DNA of 63,938 bases, the filler included, from Ministeria vibrans ATCC 50519 (Eukaryota > Protista > Filasterea), in the NCBI GenBank assembly GCA_943704425.1. It is 6 parts of 6 records of this genome, joined end to end, with 100 filler letters (N's around TTAATTAATTAA, not from the genome) between each part and the next. Parts side by side here need not be neighbours in the genome. Positions count along the whole stretch, not along the records: positions 1 to 25,118 come from CALSCP010002773.1; 5 more parts are not named here. One strand, given 5' to 3'. Made by a program: the position numbers and the translations under genes. Under the pieces are notes generated by a model. That model saw nothing but the letters and a program-made list of their open reading frames with translations, ran no database searches and was not told the origin of the DNA. Every line of letters starts with the position of its first letter. The stretch's first letter is position 1. Below are positions 6,309 to 23,712 of this stretch, in pieces.

Positions 6309-9100
6309 TCAGACGGCAATGGAAGCGGCAACATTGACGGGCGCAAGGTACTCGTACTTGAGCGACTGGTCCTTCTCACGTTCGCGCACGAGAGTGTTCA
6401 TGCGCTGCATGGTGGCGTGGAAGGCCTCGACGGCAGCTCGCACAGCCGCACTGTCACTTTCGGAGCTCAACGTCTCTGTTAGTGTGTTGCTCAGGGTCTC
6501 AACGTTGTCCAGTTGCAGCGGCGACGTCAACGTGTCCGGTTGGCGCGGTGGCAAAGACACAGTCTACACACGAATCATAATTATTATTATTTATTACATC
6601 TACACACAGTCAGATAACACACACACACACACACACACACACACACACACACACACACACACACACACACACACACACACACACACACAAACAAAAAAAA
6701 AATCTCGTACGTTTAAAGTGAAGATTGTTTCGCGGGTGACATCAGCGGAAGGGAGGGCGTCAACAATGTACTTCATTGTGACAAGCGACTCGTTCTTGGG
6801 CATCTCACGGGTGAGCGTCAGTGGATGATTGGGAACAAAGAGGTTGTAGCGACTCTGGGCAAAGTTGACAGCCGAGTGCTGGGCAGACGCAGTAAAGATG
6901 ATCTCAGAAAGAGTCAGACTAAGCGAGGCTAGCGAATCAAAGGGGGCAATACCGCCCACAATGGCTGCACCGTCAGGATCAACGAGCTCGCGATGGAGCG
7001 CCTGGAGTGCGACATCGTCGCGGATGGTTGCGTCGCAGGGGTCAGTGCTGGGACCGGTACAGCCGTAGATGGCGCGCAGGAGGGACGTGACGTAGGTCGT
7101 AATGGCGTCCCACAGACGAAAGGCGTCGTCGCGGTAGTGGTAGCCTGGCAGAGGGTCACGAGCGGTGCCTTGGTCCGCCTCAGGGACGCGCTCGATACCC
7201 TGCCGAGCAAGGCGACTGAAAAACATGGAATCGTGGAGGGAATAGTTGGCAAACGTGCGCACAAGCAGCTGGAAGGCGCCGTGGATGCCAATGCTAAGCA
7301 TGCGGTCGAGGGTTGGGTTAACGGGGTCAACGAGGGAGCGACGCGCAAGACTGTTGATGGCAATGGTGCCGCGCAGGTGAGGCAGCATGAAAAGAAGGAC
7401 GGGATGGTGCGCGGGCAGTTGGCGGTGAAAGGCCACAACAAACGGCTCAATGACCATGTGAGTGAGTCCAAAGTGCTCCACCACCTCGTGCACATTGGCA
7501 TCGGCACACATGACGTGCATCTTGGCAAAGAGCCACACAAGACTCTCGCGGTGCGTGTCGTCGTGGCGGTGTGTCAGCGGAGGCACATAGACACGGTTGA
7601 CAAGGGGTGCAGCGTGGCGCGTAAGCTGAATGGCAATGGGCAATAGTTTGCCCGATGTAGACACGTAGAGCAGACAGAGAGCAGGGTAGACTTGGCGCGT
7701 GTCCTTGAGTGTCACATTCACCAGAATCTCATAGTCTAGGACAAGCAAACAATATACAAAAAAAACCAAGAGAGAAGTAAATATGTAGAAAGGTGCGTAA
7801 GTAGTAGTAAGGTGTGTCGAAAAGCTTTGCAGCAGGATGGGACTGGTCGTACCGACGTAGTAAAGACGATTATCAGAGCGGAGTTGAGCAAGGGTACGCT
7901 CAGAGCGATGGAGAAGGAGAGCGTTGATGCGGGCGCGAGTGTCCGAGTCGAGATGCATGATGGGTGGAGGAACGCCGCGGTGGATGGCCATGGGGTTGGC
8001 GCCGGTGAGGAACTGCTGAGCAAAGACGGAGTCTTCGCGCCACGAGTTTGCACCAAGTTCGGAAATGAGTGGAGCGGGGACAAAGAGACGCGGAGAGTGC
8101 ACGGGGCCGAGGTAGGCTACAAAGTCCTCGGGCACAACAAAAGCATTGCGGTCGGCACCAAACCAGGAAACAAAGTCAAAGAGGCCCACGGTGGCCAAGA
8201 GGCCAGCGAGTCCACCATCAATGAGCAGGTAAAGGACGTTGGAGCGACTCCATGCCTCGGGGTCGTGTCGCTGGGAGGTGGTCAGCGAGGGCACATCGAC
8301 GGCAATGCGCCGGGGCAAGCTTACGCCCAGGCTGGCCAGGTCGGGTGGGAGCGAATACGACGCATACGAATAGCGTTGCACGTCGCCTGCGCCCTTGTAC
8401 CGGTCAAACTCAGGTGGGCCCGAAAACACCTCTTTGCCCGTTGGCTCGACCTTCTGGCTGGCGGGAGATCGGCGTAGCTTGGCATTCTCCGTGTATGCCA
8501 CGAGCCGCAGATGATTCACGGCGCCCAGCGGCTGTAGCTCGGGCGGTGCATGCCACACGTTGAAGGCGAGATCCTTTTCGCAAAAGTGGTTGAAATCGCG
8601 CTTGGAGAAGTCCTGTGCGGGGATGTTGACCGTCGCAACCTTAACCCAGGGGGTTGACCAGGGGATGGTGGGGTCCTCGATGGGTTCCTATTGAAATAAA
8701 AAACAAAGCGTAGAAACGTAGAGTGAGACAGGCAATGATGATGGGAGGGATGAAAGATATCGTGATTATGAGCTGGTGCGTGTGGGAATCGAGTGTGCTG
8801 CCTTGGTGGGTATCGTACTGCACATGGATTTTCCTGCAGCTGCACCATAAAGTCAAAGCAGGCGGGTTCTTCGTGGACGGTCAGCTGGTCGCGCATGACA
8901 AAAGTGTAGAAATCGGTGCGCTTCACTGATCGGCGCAGGTTGTGATTTCGCGCGCGACGCTCGTCAGACACAGAGCCGAAGCACGGCGTGATTTTGTACT
9001 TCATAGCCTGTCCGGCTGATTTTGGGCCCATGCGGTAGGGCAGAGTGGAGAAAAAATCCCAGTCGAGGGGAGAGTCCAAGTGCAGATATGTGGGAATCAG
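6309..9100 (-). CDS. 3' half of a catalase-like (AOS-type) heme domain fused to a lipoxygenase domain; no start codon here, 5' half at 21660-23712
   Basis: Catalase-like: SPLDWDFFSTLPYRMG, FDFMVQLQ, PIEDPTIPW, FNVWH..PLGAVNHLRLVAY (proximal R-x3-Y). LOX: WREDSVFAQQFLTGANP, LLPIAIQL, WLFAK, HEVVEHFGLTH, PHLRGTIAINSLAR, YHYRDD, SAQHSAVNF, C-terminal SIAV. Exons about 8819-9100, 7853-8687, 6712-7736, 6309-6562. Confidence 0.92.
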
Positions 9101-9318
9101 CTAAAAGAAAACAGAAAGAAAGAAAGAAAGAAAGAGAGAGAGAGAGAGAGAGAGAGAGAGAGAGAGAGAGAGAGAGAGAGAGAGAGAGAGAGAGAGAGAG
9201 AGAGAGAGAGAGAGAGAGAGAGAGTGTGTGTGTGTGTGTGTGTGTGTGTGTGTGTGTGTGTGTGTGTGTGTGTGTGTGTGTGTGTGTGTGTGGCTTATTA
9301 TTCAATTTTGTGCTGTAG

Positions 9319-21379: not shown

Positions 21380-21659
21380 CTAAAAAGAGTGATAAGTAAG
21401 AGAGAGAAGGTTAGGTTAGAGAAAGAGAAGGAAAAAAAAACAAGGATCTTCTATATATATATATATAGAAAGAGAGAGAGAGAGAGAGAGAGAGAGAGAG
21501 AGAGAGAGAGAGAGAGAGAGAGAGAGAGAGAGAGAGAGAGAGAGAGAGAGAGAGAGAGAGAGAGAGAGAAAGAAGAAAGAAGCAAAGTGGAAAAGGAACA
21601 AAGTGGAAAAGGAACAAAGTGAGAAAACAACAACAACGACAGAGAATATGAAAGGTTAC

Positions 21660-23712
21660 AATTTCAAGAAGGTTTCCAAGCATTTTGACGCCAAACTCGC
21701 CCTTGTACCAACGAGGTGCGTTCTTGAAAGGGAAAATACCCAGAACCCACTCGAGCAGGTATAGCGGGTGGTCTCCTGCGAGCGCCAGTGTCTTGCTGAA
21801 CGACGGATACGTCTTCTGCTCGTGCGCAAAGAACGTTTCTCCGCTAAGAAAATGAAAACATTTTCAATTTTTGAAACAGACAAACATACAGACATACACA
21901 TATATTTTTGGTCATTATTATTATGAAATAATAATAATTATAATTATTCTCTCTCGTCTCACCTCAGGAAGATGAAGTCTTGAGTGTTTCGTTCGTGGTC
22001 AATGATGATTTTCTCGCCGGGAACGCCCATAACTTTGATCGCGGCCCCACGCACATCCGCTGAGAAACACACACACACACACACACAGAGACACAGACAC
22101 ACACACACACACAAACCATAGGGAAAGAAAGAGAAAGAGGAGGGAAAAGAAAAGAACAAAGGGGTAGAGAGAGTGAGAGAGAAGAAGAAGAAGAAGAAAC
22201 AAAGGGATAGGTTAAGATGAGACGCAACTATGCAGCGCTGTGGGAGAGGGCGTTTTCGTACGTTTAGTGTCGTCACCGAGTTTGCCGGCACTAGACGAAA
22301 AGCGAATGTAGGCGTCAAACGAGCGGCCAAGGTGGCTGAAGACGCCATGGCGCAGTTTGGGGTCGAGGGAGTCGGCCACGTCGAAGGTCGCGCGCACGCA
22401 GCCAAGCGACTTGCGGTGCTGCAGACGCCAGTCGCGCACCTTGCCATTCTCGGAGCCGCGCACAAGGTCGGCAACGGCATTGCGCTCAAGGTCGGATGCC
22501 TCGGTGAGGGCAGCCGTGACACCGTCGATGTCGCGCTGGTCGAGGCCGCGTGGGAGAGGACACGCCGCGGGGTTGTCGACGCTCACCTGCTTGAAGACAA
22601 TGAAGAGGATGCACACGAGCGCTGTAATGCGGATGAAGTATGGGATGGCGCGCCACTTGCGACTGCGACGGGGCAGATGACTGAAGTACCCCGCGGCGTA
22701 CAGAGCCATGCCGAGCAGCGAGCCGAGGAAGTAGAAGAGCTGGACGGTGCGGCTGGAGGTGATGATGAAGCCGCGGAAGCACAGAGCGAGATAAACAATC
22801 CGCTTGAACGTGTTGCCAAAGGGCTTGTAGAAGCGTGCAAAGAGCGAGCCGTCGATGGCGGCACGTCGGTCGAGAAAAGGGAAGATTTGATGGTAGAAGA
22901 GGGCAACCAGCAGAGCACTGGTGGCCGTCGTGAATTGCAAATGAGCGTCGCCCGACGACAGGAGCACCTCGCGCCACTTCCACGGAATAAACGGCATGTC
23001 GGTGTAGCAATTCACAAGCAGGCGCACATAGATGACCTGTGTCGAAAAAAAACGAACCAAACACAAACAATCATGATCGCGCAATTACGGATAATTGATG
23101 TGGAAATGAAGTGTTTCGTACAAAGGCAAAGAGCTGACGGGGATAGTCCAGGAGAACGGTGCGGCCTGCAGCCTTGAGAGAGAAGTCGGCGGGCAGTGCG
23201 AGGTGCGTGGCTTTGAAGTCGATGTACAGCAAGAGGGCAGTGAGGAGCGACGTGTGTGCAAAGGGGAAATTGTAGCCGAACCGCAGCGCCGACGTGACGA
23301 GGAGGACATAGTTGGCCACGAGGAGTGCGCCGGCTCCTGTGTGGGGGAGGGGCGGGGGGGGCGGAGAACACGAATGGGGAACACGGATGTGATTTCAGAG
23401 TTAATGTCTATTCTTCGGCGATGAAACGAACGTACGCGTCGAGTGGGCTTCAAGCACAGCCTCGGGCAAAGCAGGGAAGTTCATGGACCAAAAGTCACCT
23501 GGAGGCTCCTTATCATCGCCGCGATCGTCGTCGGCAGGGGCGGGGGAAGGCGTGGGCGACGGAGACGCAGCGGCATCAACATTGTGCAATGGTTCCGTAG
23601 TTGGAACCCGACGCCGCGGGCCACGCGCCGCGGGAGTCGGCGTGAGACCAACCGGGTCTATCGTCGCAAACGCACGTGATTTCGAACGCGTTGAGCGAGC
23701 AGGGGTTGACAT
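21660..23712 (-). CDS. 5' half of the catalase-like/lipoxygenase fusion: multi-pass membrane region plus N-terminal catalase-like heme domain
   Basis: ATG at 23712 and several hydrophobic segments, then RLQHRKSLGCVRATF (distal His), LRHGVF, YIRFSS, DVRGAAIKV, QDFIFLSGETFF. The last exon ends at a phase-0 donor (GTAACC) at 21659. Confidence 0.85.

Follow-up and report, generated by a model that had tools for sequence, protein, structure and literature searches.

The DNA analyzed here, a stretch of 63,938 nucleotides (filler included) from the filasterean Ministeria vibrans ATCC 50519 that we refer to as the window, holds in its positions 1 to 25,118 the whole of contig CALSCP010002773.1 (25,118 bases), which is present entire and belongs to an assembly of 29.7 Mb in 2,860 contigs. 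On the minus strand of this contig lie two groups of exons, five in 23712-21660 and four whose coding sequence runs from 9100 to 6309, that together encode a protein with predicted membrane segments, a putative heme domain related to catalase and a lipoxygenase (LOX) domain; we call this the heme-LOX gene. Exons 5 and 6 are 12,559 bases apart in the contig. An initial annotation of the locus had proposed the two halves, with a phase-0 donor at 21660 and a phase-0 acceptor at 9100, and both splice sites are indeed found in the sequence: exon 5 ends in ...GNLLEI followed by the donor GTAACC (21660/21659, phase 0), and exon 6 follows the acceptor TTTTAG with LIPTYLH (9101/9100, phase 0). The halves are a single expressed gene of nine exons. 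All nine are open in frame and give a coding sequence (CDS) of 3,945 bases and a protein of 1,314 residues, close to the 1,300 or so estimated originally, within an mRNA of about 4.05 kb. Two features went beyond that first description, namely three introns within the downstream half and genes on the same strand between the halves.

The protein consists, from its N-terminus, of a charged tail of about 95 residues, about seven hydrophobic segments, the heme domain, a linker of about 135 residues and a putative iron LOX domain that lacks a PLAT domain. Exon 1 (23436..23712, minus strand, as are all exons of the gene) begins with the ATG at 23712 and contributes 92 codons plus one base of Ser/Pro/Arg-rich charged tail, in which there is no hydrophobic segment, before a GTACGT donor. 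The first hydrophobic segments are in exon 2 (23122..23336; hydropathy peak at its residues 1-21), which has canonical GT..AG borders and keeps the frame, and more follow in exon 3 (22262..23036); this exon also has a juxtamembrane Cys-Pro-Leu motif and, where the heme domain begins, its candidate distal His (RLQH). Exon 4 (21963..22059), identified by tblastn with the homologues P0001 and P0151 and by the family alignment, supplies the heme-domain block DVRGAAIKV...TQDFIFL, and exon 5 (21660..21843) carries this domain on to the donor at 21659. Introns 1-4 are 99, 85, 202 and 119 bases long, all canonical GT..AG. In the 3' half, exon 6 (8819..9100) begins the second part of the heme domain (LIPTYLH...FFSTLPYRMG...KYKITPC); the matching RNA pieces cover 8818-9100, a cut that can be shifted by one base. 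Exon 7 (7853..8687) completes the heme domain (PIEDPTIPW, RLVAY) and encodes the linker, which includes one hydrophobic stretch, and then the first part of the LOX domain; exon 8 (6711..7735) holds the LOX catalytic core (HFGLTH, HSAVN) and is joined to exon 7 at 7735/7853 in RNA; exon 9 (6206..6563) encodes the C-terminus ...ASIAV and contains the stop codon (6311-6309), a 3' untranslated region (UTR) of 103 bases and the poly(A) site at 6206. With the exon 5-6 interval excepted, the known introns of the gene range from 85 to 202 bases. A genome search found no second copy of either half, so that each is single-copy.

The evidence that joins the halves comes from RNA. Logan contigs from four public runs were aligned to positions 5900-9112 of the window. 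Contigs from runs X1 and X2 skip 6564-6710, 7736-7852 and 8688-8818, the three introns of the 3' half, and run X8 reads through them; X1 and X2 are therefore RNA and X8 is DNA. Beyond 9100 the X1 and X2 contigs carry 30 bases that are not matched by the adjoining assembly sequence; the window contains this 30-mer a single time, as the last bases of exon 5 (21660-21689). The exon 5-exon 6 joint is thus present in mRNA, exactly as the 21660-9100 junction had been predicted, and the idea that the exon at 9100 might have some other 5' partner is contradicted by these contigs. The X2 contig of 4,075 bases starts with 22 T before 6206, runs for 2,500 bases over exons 6-9 and extends 1,553 bases further upstream of 9100. 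Of these 1,553 bases, exons 1-5 take up 1,548 and the 5' UTR the other 5, and the whole is accounted for as 5 bases of 5' UTR, 3,945 of CDS, 103 of 3' UTR and 22 A. A polyadenylated contig that fits the open frame in this way places the heme and LOX domains in one translated frame, heme domain first. Four single-base differences separate the contig from the public runs (6283 A>G, 7549 C>T, 8796 T>C and 8936 C>A), and two of them are common to RNA run X2 and DNA run X8, a sign of variation between strains or alleles.

Comparison with a choanoflagellate transcript gives the same gene structure. The Savillea parva protein P0147, in which membrane segments, heme domain and LOX domain are contiguous within a complete open reading frame of 1,352 residues, is colinear with the two halves: its residues 447-500 match 22427-22266, 596-679 match 9082-8822 and 681-1280 match 8687-6708. 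The 96 residues in between that remain unmatched account for exons 4 and 5, and the joint thus shows neither loss nor duplication of sequence.

The LOX domain is recognized from profile and sequence matches; here and below, the searches were run exon by exon. On the open frame at 6603-8687, PF00305 scores 180.8 bits, well above its curated cut-off of 23.6 bits (E 6.1e-53), and exon 8 matches 54 LOX chains among the solved structures, the best being Cyanothece LOX2 (5MED, E 7e-43), with coral 8R-LOX at E 2e-38. The metal-ligand motifs His-x4-His (HFGLTH) and His-x3-Asn (HSAVN) align with 5MED and with all homologues. The chain ends in Val, not the usual Ile; some other LOXs also end in Val. No PLAT domain was found by Pfam before the LOX core in exons 6-8, and the linker of about 135 residues has no match. 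In this the protein resembles the PLAT-less cyanobacterial LOXs, whereas animal- and plant-type LOXs carry an N-terminal PLAT beta-barrel. Within the linker, 8150-8240 (minus strand; exon 7 residues 148-177) is strongly hydrophobic (LYLLIDGGLAGLLATVGLFDFV) and lies between the heme and LOX domains; homologues likewise have a hydrophobic stretch at this place, which may be a membrane-inserting or interface helix. A full LOX and an R-x3-Y motif (RLVAY) had been expected in the downstream half, and both are there.

The heme domain is, as judged from its sequence, catalase-related. Exon 3 alone matches catalases weakly (E 0.0064), with RLQH falling on the distal-His motif and aligned to RRMH of catalase 4E37, but a profile of the family matches catalases at E 3.8e-10 and the catalase-related protein 3E4W at E 2.1e-9, over the beta-barrel half of the fold. 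Pfam Catalase matches the homologues P0039, P0147 and P0041, and an AlphaFold model of P0001 (33% identical; pLDDT 73) has coral structure 3DY5 as its best Foldseek match (E 3.9e-25). The distal His is present in exon 3 and in all eight homologues that reach this column (P0002, P0003 and P0005 start after it), and RLVAY, with the candidate proximal Tyr, lies in a block PLG..N..R...Y that is conserved in all homologues, although the alignments to solved catalases stop short of this region. The proposal of a multi-pass anchor followed by half of a catalase-like heme domain holds as to the hydrophobic segments and the catalase-related domain; of the profile hits anticipated for the joined protein, Lipoxygenase (PF00305) was obtained and a Pfam catalase match in its own exons was not.

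The membrane part gave no Pfam family when single exons were searched and no usable match in an ESM Atlas search. In relatives the membrane region has about 4 to 12 segments, which hardly align with one another; the last two or three segments here align with P0050 (E 5e-15) and none align with P0147. Positive charge is strongest in two loops, DRRAA...KR and HLPRRSRKWR, which lie two hydrophobic segments apart, the second directly before the last segment, and would thus be on the opposite side from the catalytic part; six Cys are conserved across the family, and one homologue (P0055) starts with a signal-peptide-like segment. From the positive-loop pattern, the long N-terminus without a signal peptide, the six conserved Cys and the homologue with a signal peptide we infer, weakly, a topology of seven segments with a cytosolic N-terminus and the catalytic part lumenal or outside the cell.

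The three-part architecture is not confined to M. vibrans. It is contiguous in P0050 and P0149 (1,430 and 1,502 residues) from the amoebozoan Luapeleamoeba hula and is found in the metagenomic proteins P0039, P0151 and P0041 as well as in the S. parva transcript; P0001-P0005 are relatives without the membrane part. Searches of the protein collections with the 695-aa frame, with the 290-aa frame (against all representatives) and with the conserved LOX region of P0002 gave no match to the organism's own protein. The homologue search suggested at the outset therefore did recover proteins with membrane segments, catalase-like domain and LOX, in S. parva and L. hula transcripts. In the tree, which is a quick tree, the window protein falls in a fusion clade (SH-aLRT 99) apart from the fish LOX rows and from the cyanobacterial LOX rows that serve as outgroup. 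This tree does not settle the branching inside the fusion clade, where the nearest row is P0050 at 40% identity. A full-text literature search found coral and cyanobacterial fusions only, none of them membrane-anchored and none in unicellular opisthokonts. The initial remark that such an anchor is not known from characterised fusions stands in that the membrane relatives are all uncharacterised; the anchor itself is shared with the S. parva, L. hula and metagenomic proteins.

We turn now to what fills the 12,559 bases from exon 5 to exon 6 in the contig. Most of this interval is a complete polycystin-1-like gene (9971..20631, minus strand), recognized from open frames and Pfam matches and not part of the heme-LOX gene; its four long open frames, separated by very short introns, amount to about 3,500 residues, and its domains are a signal peptide, WSC, REJ, GPS, PLAT, a polycystin domain and a PKD cation channel. 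Nearer to exon 5, and likewise no part of the heme-LOX gene, is an orphan last exon of an NADPH-oxidase (NOX) gene (21011..21379, minus strand) that matches NAD_binding_6 positions 51-155 and has no upstream partner exon within the contig. The acceptor in front of it, at 21380, is strong and lies 280 bases from donor 21660, with which it is in frame, yet the X1 and X2 contigs at 9100 join donor 21660 to 9100 and not to this acceptor. A minor isoform that uses 21380 may occur, as the RNA was aligned over 5900-9112. One candidate considered, a ferric-reductase-type gene made of the hydrophobic N-terminus and the NOX tail, was rejected because Ferric_reduct does not match the membrane exons and the body of the NOX gene is elsewhere, on contigs C1296 and C1520. 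C1296 (1-2900, minus strand) encodes PAS, Ferric_reduct and FAD_binding_8 and then has a donor and (CT)n. C1520, which is 477 bases long, begins with (CT)n, encodes NAD_binding_6 positions 1-51 (74-274, minus strand) and ends with ...KAFE, a donor and (CT)n; its exon end and that of the orphan exon read on as ...FE/WF..., a continuous NOX motif. The PAS-NADPH-oxidase gene is thus split over three contigs, each time within an intron with a (CT)n array in it.

Such arrays are also found at the edges of the segments in our contig (the first two given here in minus-strand reading). A (CT)53 array at 21467..21573 probably marks a false join of the 5' flank of heme-LOX intron 5 to the 3' flank of the last NOX intron; (CA)34 followed by (CT)56 at 9113..9292, directly upstream of the exon 6 acceptor, is probably a second false join; and (AG)69 at 24982..25118, the contig end, which is (CT)n on the minus strand and forms the upstream end of the 5' segment, supplies the free repeat end that mis-ordering would need. 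Two segments are therefore bounded by (CT)n arrays: the 12.5-kb block, which contains the polycystin-1-like gene and the last NOX exon, and the 3.5-kb stretch with exons 1-5. The 24-mer ATCACTTTNTTTCTTTCTCCCTCC, which adjoins (CT)n in the window (24955-24995, minus strand) and also in C1520, has at least 1,286 occurrences in the genome, against 0 for its reversed control; copies of ATCACTTTNTTTCTTTCTCCCTCC are often tandem, at a spacing of about 29-41 bases, and are often at contig ends. It is an abundant minisatellite family. Since this 24-mer is so frequent and so often at contig ends, the associated (CT)n repeat family is a general obstacle for assembly.

We think it probable that the contig has been mis-ordered at its (CT)n arrays by a local swap of order, and that the 12.5-kb gap, implied to be an intron by the splice sites of the initial annotation, is no intron at all. 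The true order would be C1296, C1520, positions 21466..9293, positions 25118..21574 and finally positions 9112..1. Real intron 5 would then consist of 86 bases, (CT)n and 35 bases, a few hundred bases in all, which is the same form as that of both NOX introns, while an intron of 12,559 bases would be 60 to 150 times the size of the others in this gene. In the proposed order the eight repeat-bounded flanks pair with none left over and the NOX gene is whole. The join at 21467-21573 is in any case not a simple true adjacency, because the NOX last exon must follow C1520. The error would be of the type in which two loops hang on the same repeat, a classic ambiguity of assembly. Random double chimerism was rejected: there are more than 1,000 such repeats, and it is very unlikely that chance would rejoin a segment with its right partner, so that only a local order swap or a real nesting of genes is reasonable.

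To the combined reading, a nine-exon gene for a membrane-anchored heme-LOX protein lying in a mis-ordered contig, we assign a probability of about 0.7. Several points weigh against it. The order is deduced, no available DNA read or contig spans either (CT)n array (the X8 DNA contig stops 28 bases into the repeat), and a genome search found no contig that directly links the two intron flanks; mis-ordering also needs both contig joins to be wrong where nesting needs only one. On the side of the protein, Pfam found no catalase domain in single exons, the relation of the protein's own exons to catalase is that faint exon 3 match, with the case made by the family profile and by the model of the 33%-identical P0001, and the residue at the position of the distal Asn, four residues before an FF pair and with its codon split between exons 4 and 5, is Ser.

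The strongest competitor, which we regard as unlikely, is a genuine long intron. The distance from exon 5 to exon 6 would then be at least 12.6 kb, and more likely over 20 kb once the C1296 and C1520 exons are restored, one (CT)n junction having collapsed, and intron 5 would host two complete genes of its own strand, the NOX gene and the polycystin-1-like gene. The contig as assembled does put the block between exons 5 and 6; if the block is correctly joined to the (CA)n(CT)n array that precedes exon 6, a single assembly error suffices, and the flanks of both halves are single-copy with no other contig linking them directly. But the other introns of the gene are only 85-202 bases long, and the transcript would have to cross two multi-exon genes of its own strand, with their acceptors and poly(A) sites, whereas the RNA contigs at 9100 still carry the 21660-9100 joint. 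Nesting would furthermore require two more repeat-bounded flanks that have not been seen, and mis-ordering requires none.

A second alternative concerns function, and we hold it to be less likely still: the heme domain might be uncoupled from the LOX product, either serving as a catalase or peroxidase with H2O2 or another peroxide as its substrate or being a heme sensor without catalytic activity. A Thr-His pair is a hallmark of the catalase relatives that metabolise fatty-acid hydroperoxides, the coral-type allene oxide synthase (AOS) among them. Here the distal His is preceded by Gln, so that there is no Thr-His pair (the homologues have Gln, Leu or Val), and the replacement of the distal Asn by Ser likewise favors uncoupling, as does the fact that the solved relative 3E4W was deposited merely as a putative uncharacterised protein. 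These two residues do not bear out the label "AOS-like" that had been attached to the domain, which we file as catalase-related on its sequence and not as an allene oxide synthase. At the distal-Asn position P0001 has Asn, and the membrane-anchored relatives have Ser or Thr. Against uncoupling, the heme-then-LOX order is conserved across a well-supported clade (SH-aLRT 99 in the quick tree), and in every characterised fusion the heme domain uses the hydroperoxide made by the LOX (PMC3523812, PMC5617202). The distal Asn is Asn148 in human catalase and Asn137 in coral AOS (a numbering given by a reference title in PMC5617202), and the title of Gao et al. 2008, cited in the same paper, states that mutation of the distal Asn alters the rate and not the chemistry. 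Finally, that an insertion has disrupted the gene and left two halves that are either silent or expressed each by itself is suggested by the contig layout alone and is exceedingly improbable, given nine exons that are all open and two RNA contigs that join the halves exactly and in frame, one of them full-length, polyadenylated and 4,075 bases long.

The remainder of the contig holds further genes. A single-exon DUF938 gene (23824-24489, plus strand) stands head to head with the heme-LOX gene, their start codons about 110 bases apart, and an 835-base scaffold of an ENA metagenome (ERZ23497388) encodes an identical protein. Beyond the 3' end of the heme-LOX gene is a radial spoke protein 3 gene (4575-6102, plus strand) of two open frames, whose intron contains an (ATA)n tract and whose best match is EukProt 'Opistho-2' (43%), followed by animals and chytrids; its presence indicates that the organism keeps flagellar genes, and its matches mark it as an opisthokont protist with a flagellum, plausibly a unicellular relative of animals. 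Also encoded are a LEM-domain protein with a C-terminal hydrophobic segment (1088-2056, plus strand) and an exon of a Ras/Rho-family GTPase (2454-2873, minus strand). A run of ten N at 3660-3669 is a scaffolding gap already inside the contig. Automatic gene models would miss the heme-LOX gene in this contig, or fuse its first half in frame to the NADPH-oxidase tail, and the case is a warning for annotation.

A heme-LOX fusion is the textbook example of a self-contained oxylipin pathway. To our knowledge, only soluble coral and cyanobacterial forms have been characterised. By analogy with these fusions (PMC5617202, PMC3523812), the LOX of M. vibrans would make a fatty-acid hydroperoxide from polyunsaturated fatty acid at the membrane, and rearrangement by the heme domain, presumably Tyr-ligated, would then give an allene oxide, a hemiacetal that forms an aldehyde, an epoxy alcohol or something of this kind; the exact oxylipin is not readable from the sequence. 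We tentatively suggest, while thinking the odds somewhat against it, that these proteins form an undescribed eukaryotic clade of integral-membrane heme-LOX oxylipin synthases (in a holozoan-like protist, a choanoflagellate and an amoebozoan), with lumenal or exterior catalytic domains, a Ser distal pocket and products unlike those of the soluble fusions. A transcribed membrane form in a unicellular opisthokont, with choanoflagellate and amoebozoan relatives, shows that among eukaryotes this pair of enzymes has a greater age and a wider spread than one would suppose from corals, and makes the heme-LOX gene a concrete candidate for the synthesis of lipid mediators by the unicellular relatives of animals.

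The protein can be set beside four groups of similar proteins. The membrane relatives (P0147, P0050/P0149, P0039, P0151 and P0041) have the same architecture in 1,220-1,560 residues, are 34-40% identical over heme and LOX domains and share the juxtamembrane Cys motif and Ser/Thr at the distal-Asn position, but differ in the length of the membrane region. The catalase-related protein 3E4W of Mycobacterium avium ssp. paratuberculosis and the true catalases are matched by the family profile (E 2e-9 to 4e-10), and the distal His aligns with that of catalase; these proteins are stand-alone and soluble, however, and the alignments stop before the proximal-Tyr region. Catalase-related hemoprotein-LOX fusions occur in Nostoc (Anabaena) PCC 7120 and Acaryochloris marina. 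The cyanobacterial fusions and Cyanothece LOX2 (5MED) have the same domain order and, like the window protein, a LOX core without PLAT; such fusions (cyanobacterial occurrence, PMC3523812) are soluble and prokaryotic, while the window protein groups with eukaryotic and metagenomic fusions. Among corals, where the AOS-LOX and HPL-LOX of Capnella imbricata are further heme-LOX fusions (PMC5617202), the AOS-8R-LOX of Plexaura homomalla (3DY5) is likewise a single polypeptide with a catalase-related heme domain N-terminal to the LOX, and both it and the window protein have the distal His and the R-x3-Y motif. The coral fusion has no membrane segments and carries a PLAT domain before its LOX core, whereas the window protein has about seven hydrophobic segments and no PLAT; identity between the two is low, and in the M. 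vibrans protein Ser takes the place of the distal Asn and Gln that of the Thr before the distal His.

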